Shown here one piece after another: positions 8,834 through 34,145 of a DNA stretch of 64,000 nt. The stretch's first letter is position 1; every line of letters starts with the position of its first letter. The translations under genes and the position numbers were made by a program. Location of the stretch: assembly GCA_004764695.1 (NCBI GenBank), contig SMSO01000036.1, forward strand, positions 2,418,001 through 2,482,000, read 5' to 3'. The DNA is from Schizochytrium sp. TIO01. Taxonomy: Eukaryota > Protista > Bigyra: Labyrinthulomycetes. The notes under the pieces were generated by a model, which made no database searches, was not told the DNA's origin, and saw only the letters and a program-made list of their open reading frames with translations.

Positions 8834-11516
8834 CTACTCTAGCTCAAATTCAGCCCCAACAATATCTGGAGTTAGCAACGGCTCGAGTTTAGCTCTCAGA
8901 ACGCTTGGAAGACTTCTGCCTTGTATATTTTCGCTCCAGTACATACGCAGACGCTCCGCACGAACCACTCGCCACGCCTCATGCACTTGCTCTGGAGAGT
9001 CAGGATAATATAAGTCGACACTACGTCTTCTGCTGCATTTTCTTATATGAGTGTAGCAAGCTTGCTTGTTCTTGGAGCTGTATTCAAGACACCAAGCACA
9101 AAACCGATGCCCGCAGCCACCATTGCCACAGATCACAGCAGAGCATCCCTCAAATTCGTCAAAGCGAGCCTTACAATTTGGACAGCTCGTAATCAAGAGT
9201 TTTTCTTTCATGTGCTGCAAATGCATCTTTGCTTCTAAGCTCAGCCCGCCTTCTTCAAGAATCACTGCCATGCGCTTTTCAATCTCCTCTTCGACCCGAA
9301 CTAAAGCATCGCTTTCCGCTTTCATCTGCGCGATCCGCAAAAGGTGTCTCAGAGCCCTTGGCGCAAGGCGCGCAATATCTTGGCCCATGATTCTTCCATC
9401 GCATTTAACCTCCACGCATTTCATCGTTCCATCGGCACCCACAGTCACAGAGGCTTCTGGGTCCGTAGCAGCTTCTACTGAGCTTGCGATACAGTCTCGG
9501 CAAAGGAAATGTTCTCTCTCGCAGCACGTGCCCTCGGAAAGCGGGATGTCATCCAAGCATACAGGACACCTTACTAAAGGGTCTGCGGCAACCCCGAATG
9601 CCTCAAGCGCTTCAACGGCACTTGGACGATGCTCAGGATTTATCGCTTTGAGAGAGTTTATGAGCGACTGTATTGCAGATGTTCGCTCACGGGGATATAG
9701 CTTCTCTAGGACTACACCCACAGAGTACATATCCATTGCAGTTTCGAACCTGTCTACGGGCCCAGTCTGCAATTCAGGAGCAAGGTACTGTGCCGTCGCC
9801 TGAAGAGATGTGTATGTTGCTGTGGAATCCGCTACTTTCATACCATCGAAATCCCCAAGCAGTGGGGTCTCGATACTCGTGAGGAAGATGTTCTCTGGCT
9901 TGATGTCGCAGTGTACGATGTTCAGAGCATGCATGTCAGCCACCCCAATGAGTAAGCCTGAGGCAAGTCGGTTCCGCGTAGCTTTGTCTGCGTTGGGGTG
10001 TTTTTCAATCCACTCCGCCAAGTTGCCTTGCTCGTAGAAAGGCATCACGATGCATCCGCGTGGTACTTCGTGTACGATACTAACGAAGGCACCGATAATG
10101 CGGATTACATGATGCGAAGCTACCTTGCCTAGATTCGCAACCTGCGTGTAGAATGCCCTAATTTGACTTGGATGCCCGAGTTGAAACTGCTTCAGAACGA
10201 GGCTTCTGCCGGTGCTGTCTAACACCTTTTGTACTGTCTTACCACCCCTTGAAGCCAGAAGCTCTCCAACAGGCTGGAAATCCGAAATTTCTACGTTTGC
10301 TAGCCAGAGATCAGAACAAGCCACCTCAAGGACACCGTCTGCACTTACATGTACCTTTTTGAGCCATGCTTGGTTTTTTAGTAGTTCTGGGTAATGCTCC
10401 TGCGCGTGTTGCAGAGTTTCGGCAAGTTTATGCCGAAATGTTTTGCTCAGCTCGACAGGGCTACCTTCGGAGAGAATAAGCTCTTGTTTTTTGATTCGAC
10501 GCTCGAAGTACGCTTTATCTTCTTCCTCCAGGCCCTTCCCCTCGAGGTCTCTTTTGGCTCTCTTGATAATTTCCGTCGCATCTCGCGACCTGCCAAGTTT
10601 CTCGTATAGCTCTTCAACACAAGAGACATTGGTTTCCTTCGAACTCAAAAGTACATAGTCGTATAACTCCGCAATGTCCTCCGGTGAAAGAGTGATAGGT
10701 TCATCTACCTTGAAGTCTTGCGTTGATTTCTCCAAAGCATCAAATACTGAGCTAATAGCGCACAGTACTTCTGTCACTGTGCCACGAAACGTATCTCCTT
10801 TCAGGTCTTCAAGCTCTTCCTGCAGAGCATTTTGAAGTTCAGAAAGCTCAGGCTTCAGTCTCGTGGCCTTTTCAGGCTCCCTCATAGCAACCCTGAATGC
10901 GTCACCAAGTCCCAACTCACTCACTCGCAAGATGACTTTTTCCACCGCTGCTTCGCTTCGTTGATTAACGTTACTCTGATAACTGCTTTGGCTCGCCTTG
11001 TACTCTTTGACGCACTTGTCAGCCCGACCAAGCAACTCCTGGCAGCCTTTGAAGTCAGCCGCACATGCACGTTCAACCGATGATGTGCCACTTATGCTCA
11101 GACCCTGCAACAAACTGGCAAGCCTTTCCTTAAAGTCACGAACTTGAATCTCATTGCTTTCGTAGAACCCAGTCCGAACCCAAGGGTGCACATTTTGCAC
11201 GAGTGAACGCAGGCGCATTCTTTCATCGTTTCGCTCCGCAATGAGCTGAGATAAACCAGCCGGAGAGCTTTCACGAATCCGGGCTTGGCAAGATTCTAAT
11301 CGTTCTTTGGAGTTCGTGATGTCACTGGAAGTCTGTTTCAACTTCAATTGAACAAAGTGGCCTTGAATGACTGGTCCTGCGAACTCCTCAAACAATGCAA
11401 TCGCGGTCTGCAGGGAGTCCTCTCTAGCCACACCAAGGCCTGCCCGCGTGTGCGAGACTTCCTTGGCGAGTTGGACCACGTCAGCAAAGCTCACCCCACC
11501 CATGTCCGGTGGTTCT
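8834..11516 (-). CDS. Terminal exon: helical region, Ser/Thr protein kinase domain, RING1-like and RING2/Rcat-like zinc fingers
   Basis: Kinase motifs VLKQF, HCDIKPEN, GDFDG, YLAPE, DMYSVG. RING1-like CPVC..CCEREHFLCRDC..CVEVKC. RING2-like CPNC..FEGCSAVIC..CGHRFCAWCL..HIRKC. Confidence 0.9.
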
Positions 11517-14500
11517 CTGAGGTATGGTTGGCGAAACGCAGTAATAGCAGATGCTCAAGTCAGGATTCCATTCGATAGATGCTTCAGCACAGCTCGTGCA
11601 CCAGACATTTATTTCAATCACGACGGAGAGACTCAATACCCCTACACCAAAGAATCAAACTTACATAGCATCTTCTGAGCTCTTGGGCTCTGGACAAGGT
11701 TCGTTCCCCTCATGAATGGAGACACAGGAATCAGGGTCCGGGGCTGTAATATCCTCTCCAGGAGTACACACCTTTGCAAACAATTCTTTGGGGGTTATGT
11801 AGCCTCCAAACTCACACCTGTGTCAAGTCAATCAAATATTCAATACGAGGTCTCGTGAGAACAACAATTCGTGAATTTCAAGACAGCCTTGCAGCTCCAG
11901 GACCGACATTGATGACACAGCCTAGGCAAACCTGACAGCTAGCTGCGAGCGACGACGGAACTTACCAGATTCTAACAGAAGGGCATGTTTTGTGCAGAGA
12001 TTTAGCAATTGCCTTGGCGCCGTCGATGCCGATGTTATTGTGTTGGAGACTGTGTGGTCACCAATAAGCGATTGCAATGTCGCGACATGTCAGTTCAGTG
12101 CGTTCGATTCTCGACGGTATTGAGCCGCACCCATATACTGCACCACTCTCCTTTCCTTGTGTTCGATCTTGGGATTTGGCAAAAGGCCGCTTCGGTTGTT
12201 GCTCTTTACCAACGGTTCACCCATTTATTCCCTGCATTCCTCATGTCCGTAAATATTTAGTGCTCTTTCATTGACTGTTTCTTTCTCGCTCTGTATTTCC
12301 TTTTTTTTTCTCTCTCTCTCTCCAGTTTCGAATCTCAGCGCGCAGCTCTCTTTCTGCCCTCTTTCTGCTCTACAAACGTACTCCAATTGAGTGAGGTTTT
12401 TGCATCCCTTCAGTGCTTTGGCGACTGCCTTTGCGCCCTCAGAGCCAATGTTGTTCTGCTTAAGACTGTGTACGAGTATTTTCCATTCGTTGTGCAATAC
12501 AATTATTACGCGTCAGTCACTTGAGTGTTTTCCAATACTCCAAACAAGCGCTTCCCCGCCACCACAGGAACCCAAACAGCGTTCTCAACGTCATGTTCTG
12601 TATGTGCTGTATCTCTATAATTCTTCTCTCCTCAATCAATGAAACGTTGTGCATTCTGTTTCCATGATAACTCATCACCGTTGCTATCTCTTGCTCTGTT
12701 CCTGAAAGCGCTTCTTCAAGATCTACCGCCCAATCTTGAACTTTATGTCCTCAATTCTCTGTCTTTGCAAGGTGACTTTCCCGTTTTATCAACTTCGCAA
12801 CTCAGCGCAGCGCAAGTTTTCGATTTTACGAACGTACTTCACTATCGTCAGCTTCTCGCAACCCTCAAGAGCGTTGGCGACTGCCTTTGCGCCCTCTGTG
12901 CCAATGTTGTTCTCGCCAAGACTGTGGAGTAAATATCAAATATCATTCGTTGTGCAATCCAATGATTACAAGTCAGTCAGTCAGTCAATCAGTCAGTGAG
13001 ATCGTGAACTGCTTTCATGTCTGCGTCTCAAGTTCTTCTGCGAAGCAATACTTCTTCAACTTCACAACACTGATTCTCTACATTCGCATTCTCTGCTCTG
13101 CTCTGTCTGTCTTTGCATCATTCGTCCTCAGCATTCGAAATCCTACTCATCGCTTTTGACAGTTCTTTTTGAGTTTGTTTTCACATCATTTCTTCGGTTC
13201 TTTCTTTCCAAACAAAGGAACTCTTCTGCAACACATATTTTTTTCTCTCTTTGGTCTCTCTTCTTTCTTTCGTTCCGAGTCGACCATTTCTCTTCTTTTT
13301 CTTTTTCTTTTTCGTTTTCGCATCTCAAAGACTGAAATGAAATACGAAACAGCAGACTTTTCCAAACGTACTACAATTCAGTGAGGTCTTTGCATCCCTT
13401 CAGTGCTTTGGCGACTGCCTTTGCGCCCTCAGAGCCAATGTTGTTCTGCTCAAGACTGTGTACGAGTATTTTTCATTCGTTGTGCAATACAATTATTACG
13501 CGTCAGTCACTTGAGTGTTTTCCAATTCTCCAAACAAGAAGGAACTCTTCTGCAACACATATTTTCTCTCTTTGGTCTCTCTTCTTTCTTTCGTTCCGAG
13601 TCGACCATTTCTCTTCTTTTTCTTTTTCGTTTTCGCATCCCAAAGACTGAAATGAAATACGAAACAGCAGACTTTTCCAAACGTACTCCAATGTAGTGAG
13701 GTCTTTGCATCCCTTCAGTACTTCGGCGACTGCCTTTGCGCCCTCAGAGCCAATGTTGTTCTGCTCAAGACTGTGTACGAGTATTTTCCATTCGTTGTGC
13801 AATACAATTATTACGCGTCAGTCACTTGAGTGTTGCTTTCCAATACTCCAAACAAGCGCTCCCCCGCCACCACAGGAACCCAAACGGCGTTCTCAACGTC
13901 ATGTTCTGTATGTGCTGTATCTCTATAATTCTTCTCTCCTCCATCAACGAAACGTTGTGCATTCTGTTTCCATGATAACTCATCACCGTTGCTATCTCTT
14001 GCTCTGTTCCTGAAAGCGCTTCTTCAAGTTCTGTCGCCCAATCTTGAACTTTATGTCCTCAATTCTCTGTCTTTGCAAGGTGACTTTCCCGTTTTATCAA
14101 CTTCGCAACTCAGCGCAGCGCAAGTTTTCAATTCTACGAACGTACTTCACTATTGTCAGCTTCTCGCAACCCTCAAGAGCGTTGGCGACTGCCTTTGCGC
14201 CCTCTGTGCCAATGTTGTTCTCGCCAAGACTGTGGAGTAAATATCAAATATCATTCGTTGTGCAATCCAATGATTACAAGTCAGTCAGTCAGTCAATCAG
14301 TCAGTGAGATCGTGAACTGCTTTTATGTCTGCGTCTCAAGTTCTTCTGCGAAGCAATACTTCTACAACTTCACAACACTGATTCTCTACATTCGCATTCT
14401 CTGCTCTGCTCTGTCTGTCTTTGCATCATTCGTCCTCAGCATTCAAAATCCTACTCATCGCTTTTGACAGTTCTTTTAGAGTTTGTTTTCACATCATTTC

Positions 14501-17500
14501 TTCGGTTCTTTCTTTCCAAACAAAGGAACTCTTCTGCAACACATATTTTCTCTCTTTGGTCTCTCTTCTTTCTTTCGTTCCGATTCGACCATTTCTTTTT
14601 TTTTTTCTTTTTCGTTTTCGCATCTCAAAGACTGAAATGAAATACGAAACAGCAGACTTTTCCAAACGTACTACAATTCAGTGAGGTTTTTGCATCCCTT
14701 CAGTACTTCGGCGACTGCCTTTGCGCCCTCAGAGCCAATGTTGTTGTCCCCAATACTGTGTTTGGTTGGGTATCCCATTCGTTGTGCAATACAATCAATA
14801 CTACTCAGTCAATCGCTGTCCATCTGAATGCCTTCTTTCTTCTCGTGTCTTCAGAGAACTAAGAATGTCTCTCTCAGCGCCATTCTTCGTTGTCTCTGCA
14901 ATATTCATCCGCACTTTCAAATTCACCACTTTCGTGGGAGTGCGATTTCTCTATTTTTTTATTTTTTCCCCCCCAAATAATCGAATTTTGCTTATTCTTC
15001 CTTGCAACTTTAATCTTTGAAAGAGTGTTCTTGAAAGATCATATATGTGTTCGCTCTTTCTTTTGTGCGTCTGTTTTATTACTTTCTCTCATTCTCTCTT
15101 TCCGAACCATAACGCATCGATAGTATGATGGTACCATAACTACTGCGCAGTGGAGATTCAACACGATCATAAAACATACCTCAATATGGTGAGATTATCA
15201 CGATCTTTCAGTGCGTTTGCGATGGCTTTTATGCCCTCTTCGCCAACGTTGTTCTGGTCAAGACTGTGTTCATGTCATTGGTTGTTAGAAGAGAATATTT
15301 TCAAAGTTAGTAAAAAGCTGCATTACTTGAGAAGTGTTCTTTTAACATCACTACTCGAATGGCAGAACTTTCTCTCTTTTCGCTGTGAGGAATCGTTGTT
15401 CTGAAGAGTCTTCCTTCTCTCGATAAGTACCAACATTTAAGCAACACGTATATTGCTTCTGTACACTTCATTGTTGTTCTGCAAACTTTTACTCCGATTA
15501 CACCTTCCTTTTTTATATTATATTATTTTTTCATGTTTTTCAATTAAAAATTAAAATGAACAATTGGTACTGTTCTTTTCCTCTTTGAAAGAAGGCCCCC
15601 ATCACTAACTACCAATGTGGGTACTCTTTCAAACAGCTGTTGTATAGACTTATATATCAATCAAACGTACCTCAAGTCAGTGAGACTCTTGCATCCCTCC
15701 AGAGCGATTGCGATGGCCTTTGCGCCCTCTGTGCCGATTTTGTTGTAATCGAGGCTGTTTTGTGCAACACAACAAATACGAGTCAGTCAGTCAACCGCTT
15801 TCATGTCTGCGTCTCAAGTTCTTCTGCGAAACAATACTTCTACAACTTCACAACACTGATTCTCTACATTCGCATTCTCTGCTCTGCTCTGTCTGTCTTT
15901 GCATCATTCGTCCTCAGCATTCAAAATCCTACTCATCGCTTTTGACAGTTCTTTTTGAGTTTGTTTTCACATCATTTCTTCGGTTCTTTCTTTCCAAACA
16001 AAGGAACTCTTCTGCAACACATATTTTCTCTCTTTGGTCTCTCTTCTTTCTTTCGTTCCGAGTCGACCATTTCTCTTCTTTTTCTTTTTCGTTTTCGCAT
16101 CCCAAAGACTGAAATGAAATACGAAACAGCAGACTTTTCCAAACGTACTCCAATGTAGTGAGGTCTTTGCATCCCTTCAGTGCTTTGGCGACTGCCTTTG
16201 CGCCCTCAGAGCCAATGTTGTTCTGGTAAAGACTGTGTACGAGTATTTTCCATTCGTTGTGCAATACAATTATTACGCGTCAGTCACTTGAGTGTTGTTT
16301 TCCAATACTCCAAACAAGCGCTCCCCCGCCACCACAGGAACCCAAACAGCGTTCTCAACGTCATGTTCTGTATGTGCTGTATCTCTATAATTCTTCTCTC
16401 CTCAATCAATGAAACGTTGTGCATTCTGTTTCCATGATAACTCATCACCGTTGCTATCTCTTGCTCTGTTCCTGAAAGCGCTTCTTCAAGTTCTGTCGCC
16501 CAATCTTGAACTTTATGTCTGTCTTTGCAAGGTGACTTTCCCGTTTTATCAACTTCGCAACTCAGCGCAGCGCAAGTTTTCGATTCTACGAACGTACTTC
16601 ACTATTGTCAGCTTCTCGCAACCCTCAAGAGCGTTGGCGACGGCCTTTGCGCCCTCTGTGCCAATGTTGTTCTGTGAAAGACTGTGTAGTAAATAGCAAA
16701 TATCATTCGTTGTTCAATCCAATGAATACAAGTCAGTCAGTCAGTCAGTCAATCAGTCAGTGAGATCGTGAACTGCTTTTATGTCTGCGTCTCAAGTTCT
16801 TCTGCGAAGCAATACTTCTACAACTTCACAACACTGATTCTCTACATTCGCATTCTCTGCTCTGCTCTGTCTGTCTTTGCATCATTCGTCCTCAGCATTC
16901 AAAATCCTACTCATCGCTTTTGACAGTTCTTTTTGAGTTTGTTTTCACATCATTTCTTCGGTTCTTTCTTTCCAAACAAAGGAACTCTTCTGCAACACAT
17001 ATTTTCTCTCTTTGGTCTCTCTTCTTTCTTTCGTTCCGAGTCGACCATTTCTTTTTTTTTTTTTTCTTTTTCTTTTTCCTTTTCCTTTTCGCATCTCAAA
17101 GACTGAGATGAAATACGAAACAACAGACTTTTCCAAACGTACTACAATGTAGTGAGGTTTTTGCATCCCTTCAGTACTTCGGCGACTGCCTTTGCGCCCT
17201 CAGAGCCAATGTTGTTGTCCCCAATACTGTGTTTGGTTGGGTATCCCATTCGTTGTGCAGCACAATCAATACTACTCAGTCAATCGCTGTCCATCTGAAT
17301 GCCTTCTTTCTTCTCGTGTCTTTAGAGAACTAAGAATGTCTCTCTCAGCGCCATTCTTCGTTGTCTCTGCAATATTCATCCGCACTTTCAAATTCACCAC
17401 TTTCGTGGGATTGGGATTTCTCATTTTTTTCATTTTCCCCCCCCAAATAATCGAATTTTGCTTATTCTTCCTTGCAACTTTAATCTTTGAAAGAGAGTTC

Positions 17501-20500
17501 TGGAAAGATCATACGTGTGTTTGCTCTTTCTTTTGTGCGTCTGTTTTCTCACTTTTTCCCATTCTCTCTTTCCGAACCAAAACGCATCGATAGTATGATG
17601 GTACCATAACTACTGCGCAGTGGAGATTCAACACGCTCATAAAACATACCCCAATGCCGTGAGATTATCACGATCTTTCAGTGCGTTTGCGATGGCTTTT
17701 ATGCCCTCTTCGCCAACGTTGTTCTGGTAAAGCCTGTGTTCATGTCATTGGTTGTTAGAAGAGAATATTTTCAAAGTTAGTAAAAAGCTGCATTACTTGA
17801 GAAGTGTTCTTTTAACATCACTACTCGAATGGCAGAACTTTTTCTCTCTCTCTTTTCGCTGTGAGGAATCGTTGTTCTGAAGAGTCTTCCTTCTCTCGAT
17901 AAGTACCAACATTTAAGCAACACGTATATTGCTTCTGTACACTTCATTGTTGTTCTGCAAACTTTTACTCCGATTACACCTTCCTTTTATATATTATTAT
18001 TATTTTTTCATGCTTTTCAATTGAAAAATAAAATAAACAATTGGTACTGTTCTTTTCCTCTTTGAAACAAGGCCCCATCACTAACTACCAATGTGGGTAC
18101 TCTTTCAAACAGCTATTGTATAGACTTATATATCAATCAAACGTACTGCAAGTCAGTGAGACTCTTGCATCCCTCCAGAGCGATTGCGATGGCCTTTGCG
18201 CCCTCTGTGCCGATTTTGTTATTAGAGAGGCTGGTTTGTGCAACACAACAAATACGAGTCAGTCAGTCAACTGCTTTCATGTCTGCGTCTCAAGTTCTTC
18301 TGCGAAACAATACTTCTACAACTTCACAACACTGATTCTCTACATTCGCATTCTCTGCTCTGCTCTGTCTGTTTTTGCATCATTCGTCCTCAGCATTCAA
18401 AATCCTACTCATCGCTTTTGACAGTTCTTTTTGAGTTTGTTTTCACATCATTTCTTCGGTTCTTTCTTTCCAAACAAAGGAACTCTTCTGCAACACAAAT
18501 TTTTTTCTCTCTTTGGTCTCTCTTCTTTCGTTCCGAGTCGACCATTTCTTTTTCTTTTTCTTTTTCCTTTTCGCATCCCAAAGGCTGAAATGAAATACGA
18601 AACAGCAGACTTTTCCTAACGTACTACAATTTAGTGAGGTCTTTGCATCCCTTCAGTGCTTTGGCGACTGCCTGTGCGCCCTCAGTGCCAATGTTGTTCT
18701 GCTTAAGACTGTGTACGAGTATTTTCCATTCGTTGTGCAATACAATTATTACGCGTCAGTCACTTGAGTGTTTTCAATACTCCAAACAAGCGCTCCCCCG
18801 CCACCACAGGAACCCAAACAGCGTTCTCAACGTCATGTTCTGTATGTGCTGTATCTCTATAATTCTTCTCTCCTCAATCAATGAAACGTTGTGCATTCTG
18901 TTTCCATGATAACTCATCACCGTTGCTATCTCTTGCTCTGTTCCTGAAAGCGCTTCTTCAAGTTCTGTCGCCCAATCTTGAACTTTATGTCTGTCTTTGC
19001 AAGGTGACTTTCCCATTTTACCAACTTCACAACTCAGCGCAGCGCAAGTTTTCAATTCTACGAACGTACTTCAATACTGTCAGGTTCTCGCACCCCTCAA
19101 GAGCGTTGGCGACGGCCTTTGCGCCCTCTGTGCCAATGTTGTTCTCGCCAAGACTGTGTAGTAAATATCAAATATCATTCGTTGTGCAATCCAATGATTA
19201 CAAGTCAGTCAGTCAGTCAGTCAGTCAGTCAATCAGTCAGTGAGATCGTAAACTGCTTTCATGTCTGCGTCTCAAGTTCTTCTGCGAAGCAATACTTCAA
19301 CAACTTCACAACACTGATTCTCTACATTCGCATTCTCTGCTCTGCTCTGTTTTGGCATCATTCGTCCTCAGCATTCAAAATCCTACTCATCGCTTTTGAC
19401 AGTTCTTTTTGAGTTTGTTTTCACATCATTTCTTCGGTTCTTTCTTTCCAAACAAAGGAACTCTTCTGCAACACATATTTTCTCTCTTTGGTCTCTCTTC
19501 TTTCTTTCGTTCTGGGTCGACCATTTCTTTTTCTTTTTCTTTTTCGTTTTCGCATCTCAAAGACTGAAATGAAATACGAAACAGAAGACTTTTCCAAACG
19601 TACTACAATTCAGTGAGGTTTTTGCATCCCTTCAGTACTTCGGCGACTGCCTTTGCGCCCTCAGAGCCAATGTTGTTGTCCCCAATACTGTGTTTGGTTG
19701 GGTATCCCATTCGTTGTGCAGCACAATCAATACTACTCAGTCAATCGCTGTCCATCTGAATGCCTTCTTTCTTCTCGTGTCTTCAGAGAACTAAGAATGT
19801 CTCTCTCTCAGCGCCATTCTTCGTTGTCTCTGCAATATTCATCCGCACTTTCAAATTCACCACTTTCGTGGGAGTGCGATTTCTCATTTTTTATTTTTTT
19901 CTCCCCAAATAATCGAATTTTGCTTATTCTTCCTTGCAACTTTAATCTTTGAAAGAGTGTTCTTGAAAGATCATATATGTGTTCGCTCTTTCTTTTGTGC
20001 GTCTGTTTTCTCACTTTTTCCCATTCTCTCTTTCCGAACCAAAACGCATCGATAGTATGATGGTACCATAACTACTGCGCAGTGGAGATTCAACACGCTC
20101 ATAAAACATACCCCAATGCCGTGAGATTATCACGATCTTTCAGTGCGTTTGCGATGGCTTTTATGCCCTCTTCGCCAACGTTGTTCTGGTAAAGCCTGTG
20201 TTCATGTCATTGGTTGTTAGAAGAGAATATTTTCAAAGTTAGTAAAAAGCTGCATTACTTGAGAAGTGTTCTTTTAACATCACTACTCGAATGGCAGAAC
20301 TTTTTCTCTCTCTCTTTTCGCTGTGAGGAATCGTTGTTCTGAAGAGTCTTCCTTCTCTCGATAAGTACCAACATTTAAGCAACACGTATATTGCTTCTGT
20401 ACACTTCATTGTTGTTCTGCAAACTTTTACTCCGATTACACCTTCCTTTTATATATTATTATTATTTTTTCATGCTTTTCAATTGAAAAATAAAATAAAC

Positions 20501-23500
20501 AATTGGTACTGTTCTTTTCCTCTTTGAAACAAGGCCCCATCACTAACTACCAATGTGGGTACTCTTTCAAACAGCTATTGTATAGACTTATATATCAATC
20601 AAACGTACTGCAAGTCAGTGAGACTCTTGCATCCCTCCAGAGCGATTGCGATGGCCTTTGCGCCCTCTGTGCCGATTTTGTTATTAGAGAGGCTGGTTTG
20701 TGCAACACAACAAATACGAGTCAGTCAGTCAACTGCTTTCATGTCTGCGTCTCAAGTTCTTCTGCGAAACAATACTTCTACAACTTCACAACACTGATTC
20801 TCTACATTCGCATTCTCTGCTCTGCTCTGTCTGCCTTTGCATCATTCGTCCTCAGCATTCAAAATCCTACTCATCGCTTTTGACAGTTCTTTTTGAGTTT
20901 GTTTTCCCATCATTTCTTCGGTTCTTTCTTTCCAAACAAAGGAACTCTTCTGCAACACATATTTTCTCTCTTTGGTCTCTCTTCTTTCTTTCGTTCCGAG
21001 TCGACCATTTCTTTTCTTTTTTCTTTTCCCTTTTCGCATCCCAAAGGCTGAAATGAAATACGAAACAGCAGACTTTTCCTAACGTACTACAATGTAGTGA
21101 GGTCTTTGCATCCCTTCAGTACTTTGGCGACTGCCTTTGCGCCCTCAGTGCCAATGTTGTTCTGCTTAAGACTGTGTACGAGTATTTTCCATTCGTTGTG
21201 CAATACAATTATTACGCGTCAGTCACTTGAGTGTTTTCCAATACTCCAAACAAGCGCTCCCCCGCCACCACAGGAACCCAAACGGCGTTCTCAACGTCAT
21301 GTTCTGTATGTGCTGTATCTCTATAATTCTTCTCTCCTCAATCAATGAAACGTTGTGCATTCTGTTTCCATGATAACTCATCACCGTTGCTATCTCTTGC
21401 TCTGTTCCTGAAAGCGCTTCTTCAAGATCTACCGCCCAATCTTGAACTTTATGTCCTCAATTCTCTGTCTTTGCAAGGTGACTTTCCCGTTTTATCAACT
21501 TCGCAACTCAGCGCAGCGCAAGTTTTCGATTCTACGAACGTACTTCACTATCGTCAGCTTCTCGCAACCCTCAAGAGCGTTGGCGACGGCCTTTGCGCCC
21601 TCATCGCCAATGTTGTTCTGTGAAAGACTGTGTACGAGTATTTTCCATTCGTTGTGCAATACAATTATTACGCGTCAGTCACTTGAGTGTTTTCCAATAC
21701 TCCAAACAAGCGCTCCCCCGCCACCACAGGAACCCAAACGGCGTTCTCAACGTCATGTTCTGTATGTGCTGTATCTCTATAATTCTTCTCTCCTCAATCA
21801 ATGAAACGTTGTGCATTCTGTTTCCATGATAACTCATCACCGTTGCTATCTCTTGCTCTGTTCCTGAAAGCGCTTCTTCAAGATCTACCGCCCAATCTTG
21901 AACTTTATGTCCTCAATTCTCTGTCTTTGCAAGGTGACTTTCCCGTTTTATCAACTTCGCAACTCAGCGCAGCGCAAGTTTTCGATTCTACGAACGTACT
22001 TCAATACTGTCAGCTTCTCGCAACCCTCAAGAGCGTTGGCGACGGCCTTTGCGCCCTCTGTGCCAATGTTGTTCTCGCCAAGACTGTGTAGTAAATATCA
22101 AATATCATTCGTTGTGCAATCCAATTATTACAAATCAGTCAGTCAGTCAGTCAATCAGTCAGTGAGATCGTGAACTGCTTTCATGTCTGCGTCTCAAGTT
22201 CTTCTGCGAAGCAATACTTCAACAACTTCACAACACTGATTCCCTACATCCGCATTCTCTGCTCTGCTCTGTCTTTGCATCATTCGTCCTCAGCATTCAA
22301 AATCCTACTCATCGCTTTTGACAGTTCTTTTTGAGTTTGTTTTCACATCATTTCTTCGGTTCTTTCTTTCCAAACAAAGGAACTCTTCTGCAACACATAT
22401 TTTTTTCTCTCTTTGGTCTCTCTTCTTTCTTTCGTTCCGAGTCGACCATTTCTTTTTTTTTTCTTTTTCTTTTTCTTTTTCGTTTTCGCATCCCAAAGGC
22501 TGAAATGAAATACGAAACAGCAGACTTTTCCTAACGTACTACAATTGAGTGAGGTCTTTGCATCCCTTCAGTACTTCGGCGACTGCCTTTGCGCCCTCAG
22601 AGCCAATGTTGTTGTCCCCAATACTGTGTTTGGTTGGGTATCCCATTCGTTGTGCAGTGCAATCAATACTACTCAGTCAATCGCTGTCCATCTGAATGCC
22701 TTCTTTCTTCTCGTGTCTTCAGAGAACGAAGAATGTCTCTCTCAGCGCCATTCTTCGTTGTCTCTGCAATATTCATCCGCACTTTCAAATTCACCACTTT
22801 CGTGGGAGTGCGATTTCTCATTTTTTAATTTTTTTCCCCCCAAATAATCGTATTTTGCTTATTCTTCCTTGCAACTTTAATCTTTGAAAGAGAGTTCTGG
22901 AAAGATCATACGTGTGTTTGCTCTTTCTTTTGTGCGTCTGTTTTCTCACTTTTTCCCATTCTCTCTTTCCGAACCAAAACGCATCGATAGTATGATGGTA
23001 CCATAACTACTGCGCAGTGGAGATTCAACACGCTCATAAAACATACCCCAATGCCGTGAGATTATCACGATCTTTCAGTGCGTTTGCGATGGCTTTTATG
23101 CCCTCTTCGCCAACGTTGTTCTGGTAAAGACTGTGTTCATGTCATTGGTTGTTAGAAGAGAATATTTTCAAAGTTAGTAAAAAGCTGCATTACTTGAGAA
23201 GTGTTATTTTAACATCACTACTCGAATTGCAGAACTCTCTCTCTTTTTTCGCTGTGAGGAATCGTTGTTCTGAAGAGTCTTCCTTCTCTCGATAAGTACC
23301 AACATTTAAGCAACACGTATATTGCTTCTGTACACTTCATTGTTGTTCTGCAAACTTTTACTCCGATTACACCTTCCTTTTATATATTATTATTATTTTT
23401 TCATGCTTTTCAATTTAAAAATAAAATGAACAATTGGTACTGTTCTTTTCCTCTTTGAAACAAGGCCCCATCACTAACTACCAATGTGGGTACTCTTTCA

Positions 23501-24257
23501 AACAGCTGTTGTATAGACTTATATATCAATCAAACGTACCTCAAGTCAGTGAGACTCTTGCATCCCTCCAGAGCGATTGCGATGGCCTTTGCGCCCTCTG
23601 TGCCGATTTTGTTATTAGAGAGGCTGGTTTGTGCAACACAACAAATACGAGTCAGTCAGTCAACTGCTTTCATGTCTGCGTCTCAAGTTCTTCTGCGAAG
23701 CAATACTTCTACAACTTCACAACACTGATTCTCTACATTTGCGTTCTCTGCTCTGTCTGTTTTCCTTCAGCATTCAAGTTCTATTCAATGTTTTTTACTT
23801 CTTCTTGAGTTTGATTCGTATCATTTGTTCGGTTCATTCTTTCATTCTTTCCAAAGAAAGAAACTCCTCTGCAACAAATACTTTCTCTCTTTGGTCACTC
23901 TTCTTTCTTTCCGAGTCCGAGTCGATCATTTTTCATTCTTTTTTAACATTCCAAAGGCTGAAATGAAGCACCGAATAGTAGACTTTTCAAAACTTACTCC
24001 AATTTAGTGAGGTTCTTGCATCTCTTGAGTGCATCTGCGAGGGCCTGAGCCTGCACAGCGCATATGTTCATGTTACGCAGCCTATGTTTGTTGGAGATCA
24101 AGGTATGCGATTCTCAGTTCATTAGTTCTAAATCTTAGCTTTAAAATAAATTGCTCAAAGGCCATGCCTCGATCTGTCTACCCCTCTCTCCAGCATGCAC
24201 TTACAGCACCTGCGTCGTATCATTGGTGATTGCCCCGATACTCCATGCAGTCGTCAT
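8834..24257 (-). CDS. Multi-exon LRR(26x, RI-like) - helical/coiled-coil - protein kinase - RING1/RING2 (RBR-like) protein, about 1690 aa
   Basis: Manually spliced, all introns GT-AG and phase 2. Exon 1 24257-24205 (MTTAWSIGAITNDTTQV). 84-nt exons: 23998-24081, 23540-23623, 23047-23130, 22540-22623, 22000-22083, 21544-21627, 21088-21171, 20609-20692, 20112-20195, 19604-19687, 19070-19153, 18625-18708, 18147-18230, 17650-17733, 17143-17226, 16598-16681, 16149-16232, 15671-15754, 15180-15263, 14672-14755, 14146-14229, 13687-13770, 13372-13455, 12838-12921, 12382-12465, 11966-12049. Linker exon 11665-11817 (153 nt); terminal exon 8834-11516 in frame with the 889-aa ORF. Total 5073 nt, with no stop in exons or junction codons. 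Confidence 0.88.
12374..24000 (-). repeat. Higher-order tandem array of LRR exon+intron modules (5-exon unit E-D-C-B-A, period about 2452-2476 bp, about 4.5 copies plus local duplications/deletions)
   Basis: Equivalent exons recur at near-constant offsets (20609/18147/15671; 20112/17650/15180; 19604/17143/14672; 19070/16598/14146; 18625/16149/13687). Intron sequences are near-identical apart from T-tract/microsatellite length and scattered substitutions. Exon consensus LxxNNIGxEGAKAVAxALxGCxxLTxL. Confidence 0.95.
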
Positions 24258-27200: not shown

Positions 27201-28847
27201 GTTCACGCAGATTGCTCTGTCTCTTTGCCTTTTGCGTCCTGTATTGAAGAAAGACAATGTACTAAGATAAACTTTGCGCTCTCCGCAACAGAGCCAAGCA
27301 AGAAGTACACGTCTTCAGAAAATTCCGCCCTGCTAAGTTTTAATGCTTTGTCTATGATGTTGTGTTGAGGATCTTTTTCGAGAATTTCATCTGTGCTATC
27401 TCCTGAGCTGCTGGGCTGTACTTTTTGTTGTACTTGACAGATTTGACGTTTCTAATCCTGGAGAGATGTGCAATGTTCTCCCCTGGAACTCGAAATTTCT
27501 GCACACTTTTATGCTCGTTCCTTATTTCTAACTTGAAATATACCCGGGCTAGAGCTTATACTAAGACATTTTGAATTTTCTTAGGCAAACAAAAGCAAGT
27601 CAGTACCTCCTGGCACTACTACCATCAAGTTTCTTTCCACCGCTTTTGAACGCAGGGGCGAGGTAAGTTAAGACAATTCTTGCAAAAAACACGATAAACA
27701 ATGGCTGGTTGAAAGGACAATCCCTGTTGGTAATCTGTCTCTCGCTACTGCAAATGATGTCTCAATTTAAAAAAGGTTCACTATCTATTAAACGTGTAAT
27801 CTTGGACCCAACCCACGTCCTTGGGGCCATATTAGTAAATATATGAAATTCTGGCTGGCAGTAGCACTTGTTTTCACGTGCTCCGATTTCTTTTATAGAG
27901 TTGAGTTCTCAACTTAAGTTAAAGAAGGGTATGCTTGGCCAGTGGGCATGAGTTTCTACAAGTTGAGCTATGACACTCAGAAAAATCCATAATGAGCGAT
28001 ATACTATACTTAAACATGCCGAGAGTCACCCGGGAATCGAGGTAGAAGTACAAACCATCAATTGGCCATTCTGATGAGCTTTCAGAGCCGCTTTTTGTTC
28101 CCAATGCTACTTAGACGAGAGTTCTCCACAATCTGCACAGGTAGGTAGGTATTCATTACTATCGATATTTCCACCCAAGAGCGACTAGGAGTACGAAGCG
28201 CTCTCATTACACTCTTAAAGTACTTCTCAAACTTTGAATTCGCCACTCTAAAAAGTAAAGCCCGTTGCTATAAGATGTTACTTAACGATAGTAGTTTTTG
28301 GAGTTTGGGACTCCTGCGCAGCAGTGTGGCGCAAGCCGCACTCGTTTTGGAGCAAGGTTTGTTCCACATTAAAAGACAGACAGATCGGGGGTTCCGGTAG
28401 TTTTTAAATAGGGTTTACTATAACCTTCGTTCCCTTGTCTATGGTTTCTCTTGAGAACGAGGTGAGAACGAAAAGAACAAGAGAACCTCAGTAGGACTTC
28501 ATACGAACACTAAGAATCAATTTTGAAAATTTAAACTATAGGTATAATGGTAAAAAACATTGAAAAAGCACTTCAGGTTGTTTCTAAACTTGTGCCTCGA
28601 GAGAAAGCAAACCCCAAACGGCCCCAGCTTCAGATCAAACTTGCACGAGGCTTTGAGGATCAGACCCCGAACGCCGACGCGGAGCTCAAGGTTTTCGGGG
28701 ACCATTCACCCGACCAACTAGCCCAAGCACTTCAACCAAGTGCTTAATTGTACTGTCCAAACAAGAATTGCTTAAGCTTGTTCTCTCTAACCTTAATAGG
28801 TCCCTTCTAACCAGAAGGAACCGAGGCTGATTAAGGATTTGAGAGCG

Positions 28848-30851
28848 ATGGACTCTGTCTACGATGACCTTTCTCTGGACGATGGAGCTCATCTGTACGA
28901 GAGCTTGTTCGCCGCGAATGGCTTAGCAGAACCCGTAGCCGACGCATTCTGGGATCCAATTTATGAAGCTCCGTTGGGTTTGCAAACAAAGGACTTTAAT
29001 TCAAAGAGCACAGCGCCGATGGTGAGCGTTAGCATGCCGGTACCGACTCCAACGACTACAAAGTCCACGACCACCAGCAGAACACCGGGAACCCATCGTG
29101 CCATTGATCTCTTGGAGACCTGGCTCAAAGTCTACAAGATGACCTCGTGCGAACAAAGCCGCACGCTGTATGTTCAAGCTTTGTTCAAGGATCTTAATGC
29201 ATCCCACGTTTTTCGCACTGCGCGCAACGGTGGCCTTGTCTCGTTCAATCTTTCCGAGGCCGCCTCATTTGCACAAATCGGGCAGGACAAGCTGATTTCT
29301 ATGGATCAGACGCAAGGTTTCATCTTTGATCTACAGTGCAATGTCCTTAGTCGCTACGTAGATTCTGATCCTGCATCTACAAACGTGAGCAGCAGTGTTT
29401 CCTTGTGTCGTTCGAGCACCTGGGATTTCAACACCTGGGAGGCTGATCCTGGGCTCTGTACTACAGCCTCTGAATCAACTTTCCGCAATGAGGATGGATC
29501 GGATATGAAGTCCATCAACACTTCATGGACCTCTTCGTGTGCGCTGAATCGGCCCCTCACGAGATTACGTTGTGAGCGAATCGCAACAAGTAACATGCAA
29601 AGAGCACTGTCTGCCAAGCATCGAGCCTTGCTACAAGCTCCACGTCTAGCGTGTAGTGATGAGGGCGAGCCTACTCTGCAAGAGAGAAGACTCGAGGAAC
29701 TATGCTACGAAGTTTTCTGGGAGGTGCTTCTCAATAACGAGCGTCGTACTCTTATGTCTTTCATGACCAATGAGCGAAATAACTTCCATCGCCAGCTTGA
29801 CAGATATATTTTGGGCTCTTCAACCAAGCGTGGTGGATCGAAGTCACGTTCAAGTCAAGATGGACCATTTTGGTCAATCTTGAGGAATGCCCTAGGGTAT
29901 AACGAAGGTGATAAACTCCCTACTATGCGTGAGTTGTTGGCAATTCTCCCGACAGACCCTGCGCCATGGAAAAGAGCTCATCAGACAATGCCTCTTGATG
30001 AAAAACATATCCCAAACAACTTTGCAGCAACCAATTGCTTGTTTAACTTTGGCTGCGACTTCTCTTGGAAAAAAACCTTTTACCCTCCTACTCCCGGTAA
30101 GTTGAACATCTATCGAATGCGTCATCACCTGCTCAGAACGTTTCAGGCCTCATATTATCCATTTACCGAAGAACCTTGCAAACTAACATGCCTGAACACA
30201 GTTGGAGTCCATGAACGCAAATGCAAGATTGCAGTTTTGTTGCTTTCTTTATGTCGTCTTTTGTTTCCTGCTGACCACGACCACGGCAAAGGCACACAAG
30301 CTTCGGATGCTGTACTCACTTCTTGTCTTGAACAACTGTCGCTCTCTGAGCTGGGCAATCCTCGTATTCAACAGCAGCTTGAGATTCTTTGGATGACCAT
30401 GCTCCATCGCTATTGCGGCTGGATTGACCGCGGTGATCCCCGCGATGAGGACGCTCGCGATGATGAAAGTGAGTATTCTTTCGACACACAGAGCCCCCCA
30501 AGTGTTTCTAATGAGCCATCGCGAGTAGTAAAAAACTCACATCAACGTACAGGCAAAAACCATCGCCGGCTTACATTGCATAAAGTTCTGCACTGGTTTA
30601 ACCTTTTCAGGAACTCAGACTCTGCGCAAGCGTTCTTTTCCTCTGTGATCAATGTAACTCTACCACTTCACACATCCATTCTGCAAGGAGCAAACGTTCA
30701 GAGCAAGGTGGGCGCCGTCACGCCGGCGAGACGAACCAGTAGCGCAAGTAAACGGAAGCGAGTTTCTGCTACTTATGCTGGAATGTCCCCTGCCAAGAAA
30801 CCTGCGAAGGTGATTGAACCGTATTCTTCCTGGAAGTCCAGCGGTTTCTAA
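28848..30851 (+). CDS. Hypothetical protein (about 667 aa), possibly nuclear; may have an upstream exon at 28547-~28740
   Basis: Long uninterrupted ORF with first ATG at 28848; no recognisable domain; basic C-terminal stretch SKRKRVS...PAKKPAK resembles a bipartite NLS. An acceptor-like CTCTAAC..AATAG at 28785-28799 is in frame, but I found no convincing donor. Confidence 0.7.
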   Translation: MDSVYDDLSLDDGAHLYESLFAANGLAEPVADAFWDPIYEAPLGLQTKDFNSKSTAPMVSVSMPVPTPTTTKSTTTSRTPGTHRAIDLLETWLKVYKMTSCEQSRTLYVQALFKDLNASHVFRTARNGGLVSFNLSEAASFAQIGQDKLISMDQTQGFIFDLQCNVLSRYVDSDPASTNVSSSVSLCRSSTWDFNTWEADPGLCTTASESTFRNEDGSDMKSINTSWTSSCALNRPLTRLRCERIATSNMQRALSAKHRALLQAPRLACSDEGEPTLQERRLEELCYEVFWEVLLNNERRTLMSFMTNERNNFHRQLDRYILGSSTKRGGSKSRSSQDGPFWSILRNALGYNEGDKLPTMRELLAILPTDPAPWKRAHQTMPLDEKHIPNNFAATNCLFNFGCDFSWKKTFYPPTPGKLNIYRMRHHLLRTFQASYYPFTEEPCKLTCLNTVGVHERKCKIAVLLLSLCRLLFPADHDHGKGTQASDAVLTSCLEQLSLSELGNPRIQQQLEILWMTMLHRYCGWIDRGDPRDEDARDDESEYSFDTQSPPSVSNEPSRVVKNSHQRTGKNHRRLTLHKVLHWFNLFRNSDSAQAFFSSVINVTLPLHTSILQGANVQSKVGAVTPARRTSSASKRKRVSATYAGMSPAKKPAKVIEPYSSWKSSGF

Positions 30852-31613
30852 TGACATATATATAGCCCAGCAGAGCACCATACTGAGACGCTCGCTGTTG
30901 AAAATTACCAGTCAAGCGCTATTATGGCTGTGAATGCATGATCCTTCACTCATATACATATTCGAAATCTACTACATTAATTTCTCAAGGTTATCTATCA
31001 CCTTGTTAATAAATAAATAAAATTAGAACACACGCTGTCCTCTTTGAATGCTCTTTAGGATAATCTTGAATAAGAAATACTTACTTTGAGCCAAACAAAT
31101 GCGCGATTGGTGTTATTGGAAATAGTAATTATACAAAAATAATGGGTAATTCTTAAAATTCTAAATTTGTTTTTTGTTTTTGCAAGGTTTCTATTTTTTG
31201 TTTGTGTGATATTGGCGTATTCGAATAGTTTCGCAGGTGGGTGGTGTGACATAAAAAGAAAGGATGTTGACAAGGAAACTTCCGTAGTCTAAAAACCCAG
31301 TAACGGAGGGTTCAATCTTGTTCTTTCGTGTAGTACAAAATTTATTCCTGTGCATGAATGCGATGCCGACCACCACATACCCCCTTAAAAAAAATTCTAT
31401 GAGAGTTCCATGTTACAGTTATCCGAAGCTCAGGGAAAACAGGGTTTTCGATCAGGAGAAAGTCTCTTGTGGATCGAAAATCCTGAACTTCATCATCAAT
31501 CGAAGTTATAAATCATGAGCACGGCCATCCAACATGAATTAGAAATAAAGACCCTCATCATGAGTCCATTAAAAAGAGTCGATACTTGCATCTTACTGTC
31601 TCTCTTTCTCCTC

Positions 31614-32846
31614 TTACTGAGCACTGCCTCCGAGTCCAAGCATGGACCAGATAGTTCCCGAAGATCCGGCCGCTTGCTGTGCAGGTGCTTCCTCCTCCTG
31701 CGCCTTCTGTCCCGGGGGTGGGAGGTTGTTTGCCTGATCAATCGGCGTCATACCCATTGGCATTGGCGCCATCTCTGGTTGCGGTGCCGCCGCAGCTTCG
31801 GCGTGCTGAGGCTGGTGCTGAGCAGGTCCTCCAAACAGTGCTCCCTTGCGGATCGCGCCTCCGAGAGTTCCTCTCTGTTGCTGCTCGCGCTGGGCATTGC
31901 GTTCCATGAGTTCCTGCTTGAAAGCAGCTCCAATATCCTTGCCCTTGTACTTGGCAAGCTCGCGGCGCACGTCTTCAGGATCGCGCATTGCAAGGTCCTC
32001 AAGGAAGGGCACAAGGTCGTAGAGAACACGGTCCTCCTGGGTAGGGTCATTGAAGGGCTTGACGGGGATGAGGTTCTCAGACTGTTTGGGAACGGCCTCC
32101 GGCTTGTCATCAATCATAATGACTCTCTCAAGCGGACGGTTGAGGTGCGAGAGGTCCTTGATGTGCTCACCGTTCTCGTACACAGTGGCCTCGCGGAAGA
32201 GCTTGGACTGCATGACGCCAGAGGTGTCAAGGCTGTACACGAAAGGTTCAAGAAAGAAGCTGTTGCCGCTTGTGAAGAGCACAATCTCATAGAACATAGC
32301 GAGTCGGTTCAAGAAGTAGTCAGCACCAGGACGCTTCGCAGCACGCCAGCCATGGCGAGAGTCCCACTCCAAGTGGCAAAGTGTGTCCTCAAAGTCCAAG
32401 ACCAGGGTCATCGGCTGCGTCATACCAGCGGGAAGGGTGTCCGCAGGGAAGTCCGGAAGAAGCTTGTCGCTAATGGGGTCCGTGAAGGACTTCATAGATG
32501 TCTTAACTTGGTCACTGGCCCAATCCACAGCATCTCCAAGAGGGGTGCCCTTGTAGACATTCTGCATGAACCACTTGTTGGCATCCGGGTGAAATGTGAA
32601 GAAGGCACCGACTCCAGCCACACCACCAAGACCCAAAAGCCAGCCAAGGGTGCTTGTTCCACCTTCGGCGTCGCGAAGGAGAGCCTCGTCCTTCTCACGG
32701 CGCTTGGCTGCGAGCTTCTCAGCAATCTCGCGGTTCTTCGTGGCCTTGGAAGAGGACGAAGACGAAGTAGTGCACAGAGAACGCTTTGTGCAGGAAACCT
32801 CACGACGGGCGGTAGTCCGCGCGAGCGTAACGATGGAGCGCAGCAT
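31614..32846 (-). CDS. TIM50: Mitochondrial import inner membrane translocase subunit TIM50
   Basis: Basic presequence-like N-terminus, single TM (WLLGLGGVAGVGAFF), FTDP.SDKLLPD, FCP1/NIF-like domain TLVLDFEDTLCHLEWDSRHGWRAAKRPG..YEIVLFTS..HIKDLSHLNRPLERVIMID. Confidence 0.95.
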   Translation of the reverse strand: MLRSIVTLARTTARREVSCTKRSLCTTSSSSSSKATKNREIAEKLAAKRREKDEALLRDAEGGTSTLGWLLGLGGVAGVGAFFTFHPDANKWFMQNVYKGTPLGDAVDWASDQVKTSMKSFTDPISDKLLPDFPADTLPAGMTQPMTLVLDFEDTLCHLEWDSRHGWRAAKRPGADYFLNRLAMFYEIVLFTSGNSFFLEPFVYSLDTSGVMQSKLFREATVYENGEHIKDLSHLNRPLERVIMIDDKPEAVPKQSENLIPVKPFNDPTQEDRVLYDLVPFLEDLAMRDPEDVRRELAKYKGKDIGAAFKQELMERNAQREQQQRGTLGGAIRKGALFGGPAQHQPQHAEAAAAPQPEMAPMPMGMTPIDQANNLPPPGQKAQEEEAPAQQAAGSSGTIWSMLGLGGSAQ

Positions 32847-34145
32847 GGTGGAGATGATATATCTGCTTTGATAAGCGTTTATGTTTGACTTTGATGGTAA
32901 AGGTCCACAGCGTCCGACGAAATCGACGACGAATGGACGAGAAAACGAAGGCCTACAAAGCGTAGCTACAGAGCGAATAGATGGGAGACGAAGGCCCTAC
33001 GAGGGACGCTTCGATGAGGGTACGAAGAGGAACGTCGACTCGCGCGCAACAAAGGCGGCAGAGATCGAAATGAGTTTCTGCTGCTATGCGCCACGAGTCT
33101 CTCGATCCTTCTCGATGCACTTAATGGTGAAAAAAGCCACAATTTGCATGGATGAAATAGGCAAAACATTTTTCATAGAATGCATAGGATCCCCTGGTCG
33201 TTTACCTGCTATTAAGAATATTCAGTAAGAGGTATTTCCTAGTAGTAGTATTAGACTCCTAGTACCTTCTTACTACAAGAAAAAGTTGTTGGGAGACTAA
33301 TCTAGTCGTAACAAAAGAAATGTGTATATATATACATGCATGTAGACATTCATAGAACGTTAGCTCCTCGAGAGGCTGAAGAATGATTTGGGATATAGGA
33401 ACTGACACGTAGACGAGAGGGAGGGCACTCTGGCGGAAATGAGCTTGGTGCTTATGTTTTCGAATGGGGAAATAGAACAATTTTGACTGGCAGATTCCAG
33501 CACTGCGTATAAATGCTTAGAAGCCGGCACGTAAGGGGCCTGTTTCGCCTCATAAGAACATAACAAGAGCTCGTTTTATAGGACCATTGGCGTGCATAAT
33601 GTGTCGTCTTCTAACCGAATGGAAATCTAAGGGTACGTACAAACAAAATCATGGTTGCGAAAACCTTGATATATGAAGCATTGTTGAGGGAGAGCAAAAT
33701 TTGCAATATCGTCGTAACGCGGTTCCATGCTGCTGAGTGAAAACGAACGTTCGAACTAAAACCCCAGGCCAAATTTCTGACATTGTAGCGTCTTCCCCCA
33801 AATCATGACACAATTTATAAAAAAAGAAAGACAACAAAGAGAAACAAAACATGGTAAAATAAAATCATCTTTTCTGATGCTGAGAACGCAAGAAAAAAAC
33901 AAGCAATATTTGAGAGCTCGACCGGAAGGCTTCTTTTCCCACAATGTCCTTCTGCATCTTTACTGTCTGTGGCGCACTGCTATTTCCCTGAGAGCCCATT
34001 CTCACTTTTCATGTCCACATAGTTAGTAATCGTAACATGGGACTACTTTTCAACGGCTAGATTTGCAGGTCGGCACAACTGAACAGGTCATATAATTAAG
34101 GGCCTGAAGCAATCCACAAAAAGGGTCCACGAGGGTACGCTTGGA

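Follow-up and report, generated by a model that had tools for sequence, protein, structure and literature searches.

Does the regular array of small exons at one locus of a thraustochytrid genome encode a protein, and, if so, what kind of protein could it be? The question is raised by the minus strand at positions 8834-24257 of a 64,000-nucleotide stretch of Schizochytrium sp. TIO01 DNA (assembly GCA_004764695.1, contig SMSO01000036.1, positions 2,418,001 to 2,482,000), hereafter the window. The original prediction, made without database searches, described a gene with one leucine-rich repeat (LRR) per exon, fused to a kinase and a RING-between-RING (RBR)-like ubiquitin ligase, and proposed it as a candidate diversifying intracellular immune receptor. 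Our analysis makes it reasonably probable that the locus, intact and situated inside a chromosome, belongs to a large cytosolic protein family of thraustochytrids (Aurantiochytrium), to be read as a germline-encoded recognition repertoire. The evidence supports a family architecture in which a variable ribonuclease inhibitor (RI)-type LRR solenoid is followed by a linker, a helical domain and a protein kinase, and then by an RBR-type ligase module lacking the IBR domain.

The presence of an intact one-exon-one-LRR gene at 8834-24257 was confirmed. From the ATG at 24257 to the stop at 8834 the gene consists of 29 exons separated by GT..AG introns, with an open frame of 1690 aa. The LRR exons were sought by a mechanical scan of the minus strand for 84-nt segments preceded by AG, followed by GT and open in one phase. 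It yielded exactly 26 LRR-like exons, whose upper coordinates run from 24081 down to 12049, the remaining matches being low-complexity intron translations or lying inside the terminal exon. The coding sequence, joined from exon 1, the 26 LRR exons, a 153-nt linker exon and the terminal exon, comprises 5073 nt (1690 codons), its sole stop being the terminal one (local script). This joined model was used for the frame and hydropathy checks, while homology and fold searches were run on single exons or on parts of the terminal exon. All 28 introns have GT..AG boundaries, with conserved and very regular acceptor, (a)cag, and donor, gta(c/a/t)gt. In every LRR exon the first base is the third base of a split codon and the last two bases are the first two of another; the exons are therefore of phase 2-2 and symmetric. 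The exon coordinates, counts and phase, as well as the stop-free joining from the start exon to the terminal exon, had all been predicted correctly.

Exon 1 (24205..24257, minus strand, as are all parts of the gene) contains the ATG, 17 codons and two bases, 53 nt in total, followed by the donor GTAAGT, and has the same length in a close duplicate on contig C32. The array (11966..24081) consists of 26 phase 2-2 exons of 84 nt, each encoding one 28-aa RI-type LRR, with introns of 231-461 nt. The linker exon (11665..11817, 153 nt) is rich in Cys, Pro and acidic residues and has no Pfam match; the terminal exon (8834..11516, 2683 nt including the stop) encodes residues 797-1690. Neither a signal peptide nor a transmembrane segment is apparent, in agreement with the prediction of a cytosolic protein: the highest 19-aa Kyte-Doolittle window reaches 1.55 and lies inside the kinase, and the N-terminus is polar and not hydrophobic. 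Between 12000 and 24000 the two strands differ strongly in composition: on the plus strand, GC skew is about -0.22 and AT skew about -0.24, which makes the introns rich in purines when read in the coding direction. Several array introns contain short (AGTC)n runs (16731-16761, 19203-19241, 22135-22163).

Splicing of one LRR per exon is confirmed by a paralogue transcript. The complete open reading frame P0161 from MMETSP0960 (1240 aa, with LRR_6 and Pkinase matches) maps at 99-100 % identity on a paralogue, where its residues 189-216, 217-243 and 245-271 each correspond to one 84-nt exon and residues 329-1240 to one terminal exon. In a second peptide, P0025 (MMETSP0961), LRRs are spliced to a linker resembling that of the gene studied here. 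MMETSP0958-0961 represent what we take to be A. limacinum ATCC MYA-1381. Chance can be excluded as the origin of the array, since five exon types follow each other in a repeating order (see below), the same structure is found at paralogous loci, and a paralogue transcript matches it exon for exon.

The consensus of the 26 repeats, xLxxNNIGxEGAKAVAxALxGCKxLTxL, is 28 aa long and follows the RI-type pattern LxxLxLxxNxIgxeGa..La.aL. Single LRR exons match Pfam LRR_6 at 14.9-19.5 bits, below the cut-off of 23.4, because each exon splits the model; the paralogue transcript P0014 matches LRR_6 with E 1.4e-33. The assignment of the repeats to the RI type in the original prediction is borne out by the LRR_6 match of each exon.

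The terminal exon encodes, in order, a helical region, a protein kinase and a zinc-binding module. The region that separates the linker from the kinase, about 400 aa (residues 802-1201; 10304..11503), is entirely helical in its AlphaFold2 model, which has a predicted local distance difference test (pLDDT) score of 78.7; it had been omitted from the predicted domain list. Fold searches of this region with Foldseek and VIA gave no convincing PDB relative. An MLKL-like four-helix bundle was considered and found no support in the fold searches: the Atlas match to MLKL_N clusters was only 0.79-0.80, no MLKL occurred among the Foldseek or VIA matches, and the best Z score, 10.2, falls in the generic helical-bundle range. 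Alpha-pore-forming toxins (ClyA, MakA, Smh) appeared in weak Foldseek rows (E about 0.3), which were taken as generic helical-bundle noise. The predicted kinase is supported. Its core (residues 1223-1404, Pfam span; 9695..10240) matches Pkinase with E 1.9e-25 and 90.2 bits, against a cut-off of 31.7, and the beta-3 Lys (VLK), the HCD motif, the following catalytic Asn, DFD and APE are kept in paralogues and in distant homologues, as far as Sphaeroforma. With a score above the gathering threshold and the catalytic residues in place, the domain belongs to the eukaryotic protein kinase superfamily.

The C-terminal module is supported as an RBR-like, IBR-less, predicted E3 ligase by residue patterns and by the structural model. 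RING1 (9401..9568) has its ligands at C1447, C1450, C1462, H1467, C1469, C1472 and C1497-x4-C1502; they are invariant or nearly so in 22 aligned sequences, His1467 being replaced by Asp in some paralogues, and form a C3HC4 RING with the C-x4-C last pair typical of RBR ligases. No Cys/His cluster is present between C1502 and C1575; the IBR position is occupied instead by about 60 aa without zinc ligands, which form long helices in the AlphaFold2 model (9197..9385). The Rcat (RING2)-like zinc finger (9035..9184), a weak match to Pfam IBR_2, has the spacing C1575-x2-C-x9-C1588-x4-C-x4-C-x4-C-x2-C-x13-H-x3-C, invariant in the alignment, which provides for two predicted zinc sites and places C1588 at the catalytic position. 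It is followed by a conserved C-terminal helical tail ending in ..LLTPDIVG.. (8837..8995). A profile of the RING1/Rcat region matched RING1 of RNF216 (E 6.7e-8) and, in the Rcat part, parkin, ARIH1 and ARIH2 (2e-4 to 5e-3), and the AlphaFold2 model of the region (pLDDT 85.7) had only RBR ligases as top Foldseek neighbours: RNF216 (E 4e-6), HHARI, parkin and HOIL-1. The RBR-like ligase of the original prediction thus stands.

The kinase-RING1-Rcat part turned out to be a widespread and unannotated protist module. A HMMER scan gave 78 cluster representatives at E <= 1e-30, many of them aligned in one stretch from the kinase through Rcat, including unannotated proteins of Hondaea, Sphaeroforma, Chromera, the dinoflagellates Durusdinium and Polykrikos, and Euglena. 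The carriers P0013, P0022, P0028, P0042, P0040, P0027, P0053 and P0114 are listed as unannotated "protein kinase". Where scanned, the N-terminal partners were ankyrin or ankyrin plus LRR_6 in Hondaea, RanBP1 in Sphaeroforma, and WD40 in a protein from an ENA assembly. Spread across protists with differing N-termini, the module is thus old and modular, and it occurs well beyond the protist studied here. Outside this genome and its MMETSP transcriptomes, the version with LRR cassettes and its expansion to at least 50 copies were seen in only a few other assemblies. Relative to the literature searched, in which neither a kinase-RBR family nor a thraustochytrid LRR family was found, both the architecture and the coding nature of the arrays are undescribed.

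An old, widespread module with N-termini that do not look variable (ankyrin, WD40, RanBP1) would suit a signalling scaffold with an ordinary role, e.g., in the cell cycle, the ectoplasmic net or stress, in which copy and LRR variation result from subtelomeric recombination and concerted evolution. Many copies do lie in recombination-prone subtelomeres beside the ribosomal DNA (rDNA), and the Pfam scan detected no defence domain (NACHT, TIR or death-fold). We nevertheless regard a scaffold of this sort as rather unlikely: housekeeping signalling does not typically rely on a family of at least 50 members that differ in repeat number, and the distribution of substitutions in the array, described below, also stands against it.

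A search of the 64-Mb genome with the terminal exon gave at least 51 full-length matches. Its closest paralogues are on contigs C32 (95 % identity) and C7 (85 %, with one stop), the others being about 56-61 % identical. A second genome search listed many more places, among them about 55 open frames of at least 870 aa (hand count), as well as broken fragments and short variants. The paralogues, too, are preceded by arrays of LRR exons of 84 nt, with 5 to at least 17 exons within the 10 kb fetched. A single copy with invariant LRRs had been named as the outcome that would speak against the original prediction; the family is instead multi-copy and varies in LRR number. Upstream of the paralogues on contigs C13, C34, C30, C12 and C6, the opposite strand carries another array of LRR exons, again of 84 nt and spaced at a period of about 385 bp, which suggests head-to-head pairs of LRR-cassette genes. 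In short variants of the family, the helical and kinase parts are missing, and LRRs and linker lead straight to RING1-Rcat; one of them (C31:8498633-8499445) has an open frame of 340 aa, to which the MMETSP0961 peptide P0025 is 94 % identical.

How the array reached its length can be seen from its repeats. By sequence, five types can be told apart among the 26 repeats; they follow one another as A-B-C-D-E in about four rounds, with a period of about 2.46 kb. The amplified part (13372..23623) consists of this five-exon unit (about 2.46 kb, about four times) and of single-module duplications, with single-module repeats of 456 bp at 21124-22090 and 315 bp at 13207-13856. The C32 locus, a segmental duplicate, is colinear at 92-95 % identity over a stretch that starts 2 kb before the ATG and takes in the terminal exon; it contains one A-E unit and seven LRR exons in total, compared with 26 here, and has no single counterpart of the stretch 13372..23623. 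Therefore, about 8-10 kb were either amplified here after the duplication or lost by contraction in C32. We read the difference as an amplification of the five-exon unit that followed a recent segmental duplication and brought the array from about seven to 26 repeats. As each repeat occupies one symmetric phase-2 exon, repeats can be gained, lost or reshuffled in frame by unequal recombination.

Such a history might also be that of a recent duplicate, untranscribed or decaying, whose five-exon amplification is a neutral by-product of tandem-repeat instability on the way to a pseudogene. Its 26 repeats are far above the seven of the nearest paralogue, the close relative on C7 has already acquired a stop, and broken family fragments are present in the genome. 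On the other hand, none of the 29 exons is interrupted by a stop, each of the 56 splice sites is intact, and both the frame and the LRR scaffold residues are kept in all 26 amplified exons. The differences between copies are mostly non-synonymous and at surface positions, none of them breaking the frame. We therefore consider decay improbable.

The substitutions themselves were compared among array copies of the same type, using ungapped sites for introns. Exon sites are more often variable (38/420) than intron sites (98/2017; p = 0.0014), and the classified exon changes comprise 29 non-synonymous and four synonymous ones. They cluster at codons 27, 1, 3 and 4, the x positions of LTxLxLxxN, where 23 of 60 sites (38 %) are variable; the rest of the exon varies at 15 of 360 sites (4.2 %; odds ratio for the four codons 12, p = 2e-14), close to the intron rate of 4.9 %. 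Thus, between amplified copies the four codons predicted to face the ligand on the concave side vary eight times more than introns. Across 137 distinct LRR exons taken from 20 further loci, entropy is maximal at the same four positions. Drift combined with homogenization does not predict the excess of substitutions at the concave face, which stands against an ordinary scaffold. The word "diversifying" in the original prediction is accordingly upheld by at least 51 paralogues, by 26 versus seven LRRs in a 95 % identical duplicate, and by the clustering of substitutions at concave-face codons. The youngest duplication, of a single 456-bp module and involving exons 6 and 7 (window positions 21088-22083), has downstream introns identical at 372 of 372 sites and exons differing at 10 of 84 bases, exon 7 being a patchwork of types D and E; since the exons differ while the introns are identical, patchy conversion between repeat types contributes to the variation.

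Several observations weigh against reading the locus as a functional member of a recognition repertoire. First, the multi-base codon swaps suggest patchy gene conversion, which is able to mimic positive selection, and the diversification signal may be partly recombinational rather than point-mutational. Second, the hypervariable codons were partly picked after the data had been seen. Third, the canonical GxGxxG loop of the kinase is degenerate, reading ..LASRGGKT.., no obvious alpha-C Glu is conserved in the kinase alignment (a call from sequence only), and Rcat lacks the His two residues after C1588 that is found in parkin and HHARI; because of these three features, kinase or ligase activity could be altered. 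Finally, searches of the protein collections with the terminal exon and with its last 289 aa gave no near-identical peptide within the length ranges searched, the relatives being at most 67 % identical. This absence would also suit a decaying duplicate; given the length ranges searched, it is no proof of silence.

The studied locus lies among ordinary genes and not at a chromosome end: these are genes for a CEP104-like protein, TatD, a glycosyltransferase, an ABC transporter and FTR1. The ABC transporter, which lies in the window, matches a peptide of MMETSP0958 at 100 % identity and one of Hondaea fermentalgiana at 74 %, and the genome was assigned to Aurantiochytrium on the strength of its matches to the MMETSP transcriptomes. 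Two long open reading frames upstream of the gene, at 28839-30851 (670 aa) and 31515-32888 (457 aa), both on the plus strand, have no Pfam match. Several paralogues have a complete 18S-5.8S-28S cluster at a distance of 10-20 kb, close to the start of the contig, in agreement with the published layout of subtelomeric rDNA in A. limacinum. Contigs C30, C31 and C13 are 7.5-9.8 Mb long, compared with 1-4 Mb for the published A. limacinum chromosomes. Family clusters in inverted orientation occur inside contigs C34 (2.83-3.0 Mb), C30 (1.67/1.73 Mb) and C33 (1.95/2.0 Mb), and could mark joined chromosome ends.

In A. limacinum, subtelomeric arrays known as LORE-TEARS have been published as non-coding spacers with units of 366-529 bp and no similarity in databases; the paper proposes a role in end maintenance and mentions neither LRRs nor kinases (bioRxiv 10.1101/2023.06.15.545109). 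By analogy, the DNA studied here, with its period of about 450-500 bp, might be a structural satellite serving the maintenance of chromosome ends or rDNA, its reading frames being incidental. This is highly improbable, as each unit carries an open, phase-matched 84-nt exon with canonical splice sites and an LRR_6 match, a paralogue transcript is spliced exactly at such exons, and the locus is away from any chromosome end. A non-coding RNA was also considered and rejected, no Rfam match being present in the window.

If the locus does belong to a recognition repertoire, we infer an immune or non-self role for the receptor. The LRR surface would bind a variable ligand, non-self or otherwise fast-changing, and binding would release the kinase. 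The kinase could then activate the normally auto-inhibited RBR module in cis, following the logic of PINK1 and parkin within one chain, and/or phosphorylate substrates, after which the bound target or downstream factors would be ubiquitinated. A broader and more tentative possibility, held with low confidence, is that thraustochytrids possess a germline-diversified recognition system independent of nucleotide-binding LRR receptors (NLRs), in which exon-cassette LRRs gate a fused kinase-to-RBR cascade and LORE-TEARS act as a recombination nursery for specificities, possibly against mirusviruses. Mirusviruses persistently infect this host, and a persistent virus of Aurantiochytrium is known (PMC12606086); because the organism is also culturable, ligand recognition, kinase-driven activation of the RBR module in cis and the part played by subtelomeres in generating receptor diversity are all directly testable.

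Among known systems, the closest in exon structure are the LRR-ROCO candidate immune receptors of the brown algae Ectocarpus and Saccharina (Zambounis 2012; PMC11378527). Both groups of genes are from stramenopiles, encode cytosolic proteins with one LRR per exon and all LRR introns in phase 2, undergo exon duplication or shuffling, have a concave face on which variable or positively selected sites are located, and form multigene families with pseudogenes (PMC11378527). They differ in the length of the exon, 72 nt for an LRR of 23-24 aa in LRR-ROCO and 84 nt for the 28-aa RI-type LRR here, and in the effector, which is the ROC-COR GTPase there and the helical domain, kinase and RBR-like ligase here. 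A ROCO protein was accordingly rejected, no ROC or COR match being found by Pfam. If our reading is correct, receptor diversification with one LRR per exon would be known from a second stramenopile lineage, as an independent case.

Vertebrate NOD/NLRC-type NLRs are cytosolic sensors whose 28-aa RI-type LRRs are likewise encoded by 84-nt exons. The gene studied here has neither a NACHT/STAND ATPase nor CARD/PYD, and its family is far more repeat-variable. An NLR/STAND receptor was rejected on the lack of NACHT or NB-ARC matches by Pfam in the terminal exon, the linker and the LRR exons; the original prediction had seen no NACHT, NB-ARC or ROC motif either. LRRK2 and plant LRR receptor kinases resemble the gene product in joining an LRR sensor and a Ser/Thr-type kinase in one chain. 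LRRK2 differs by its ROC-COR part. Plant receptor-like kinases recruit their ligase, as FLS2 does PUB12/13, whereas here the ligase is in cis; this class was rejected because hydropathy indicated neither a signal peptide nor a transmembrane segment.

RBR ligases are auto-inhibited and become activated by phosphorylation. Compared with RNF216/TRIAD3, parkin, ARIH1/HHARI and HOIL-1, the module studied here shares the C-x4-C end of RING1, the Rcat Cys spacing and the Cys at the catalytic position, and differs in lacking both the IBR and the His after C1588 and in its fusion to a kinase and an LRR array. In the PINK1-parkin pair a kinase is likewise matched with an RBR ligase; the two are separate proteins, with ubiquitin and Ubl as phosphorylation targets, whereas here a single polypeptide is encoded, for which we infer activation in cis. 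A kinase and an RBR ligase as an effector pair in one chain were not found described in the literature searched.

LORE-TEARS, finally, share with the family the group of organisms, the unit sizes and the tandem arrangement, and the paralogues lie near subtelomeric rDNA clusters. They differ from the units studied here, which are exon-intron modules of protein-coding genes and, at this locus, are not subtelomeric. The locus adds to the family a non-subtelomeric member, a dated expansion of the array and a contrast between exon and intron rates; if our reading is correct, the published subtelomeric "spacer" repeats could be re-read as arrays of coding exons.

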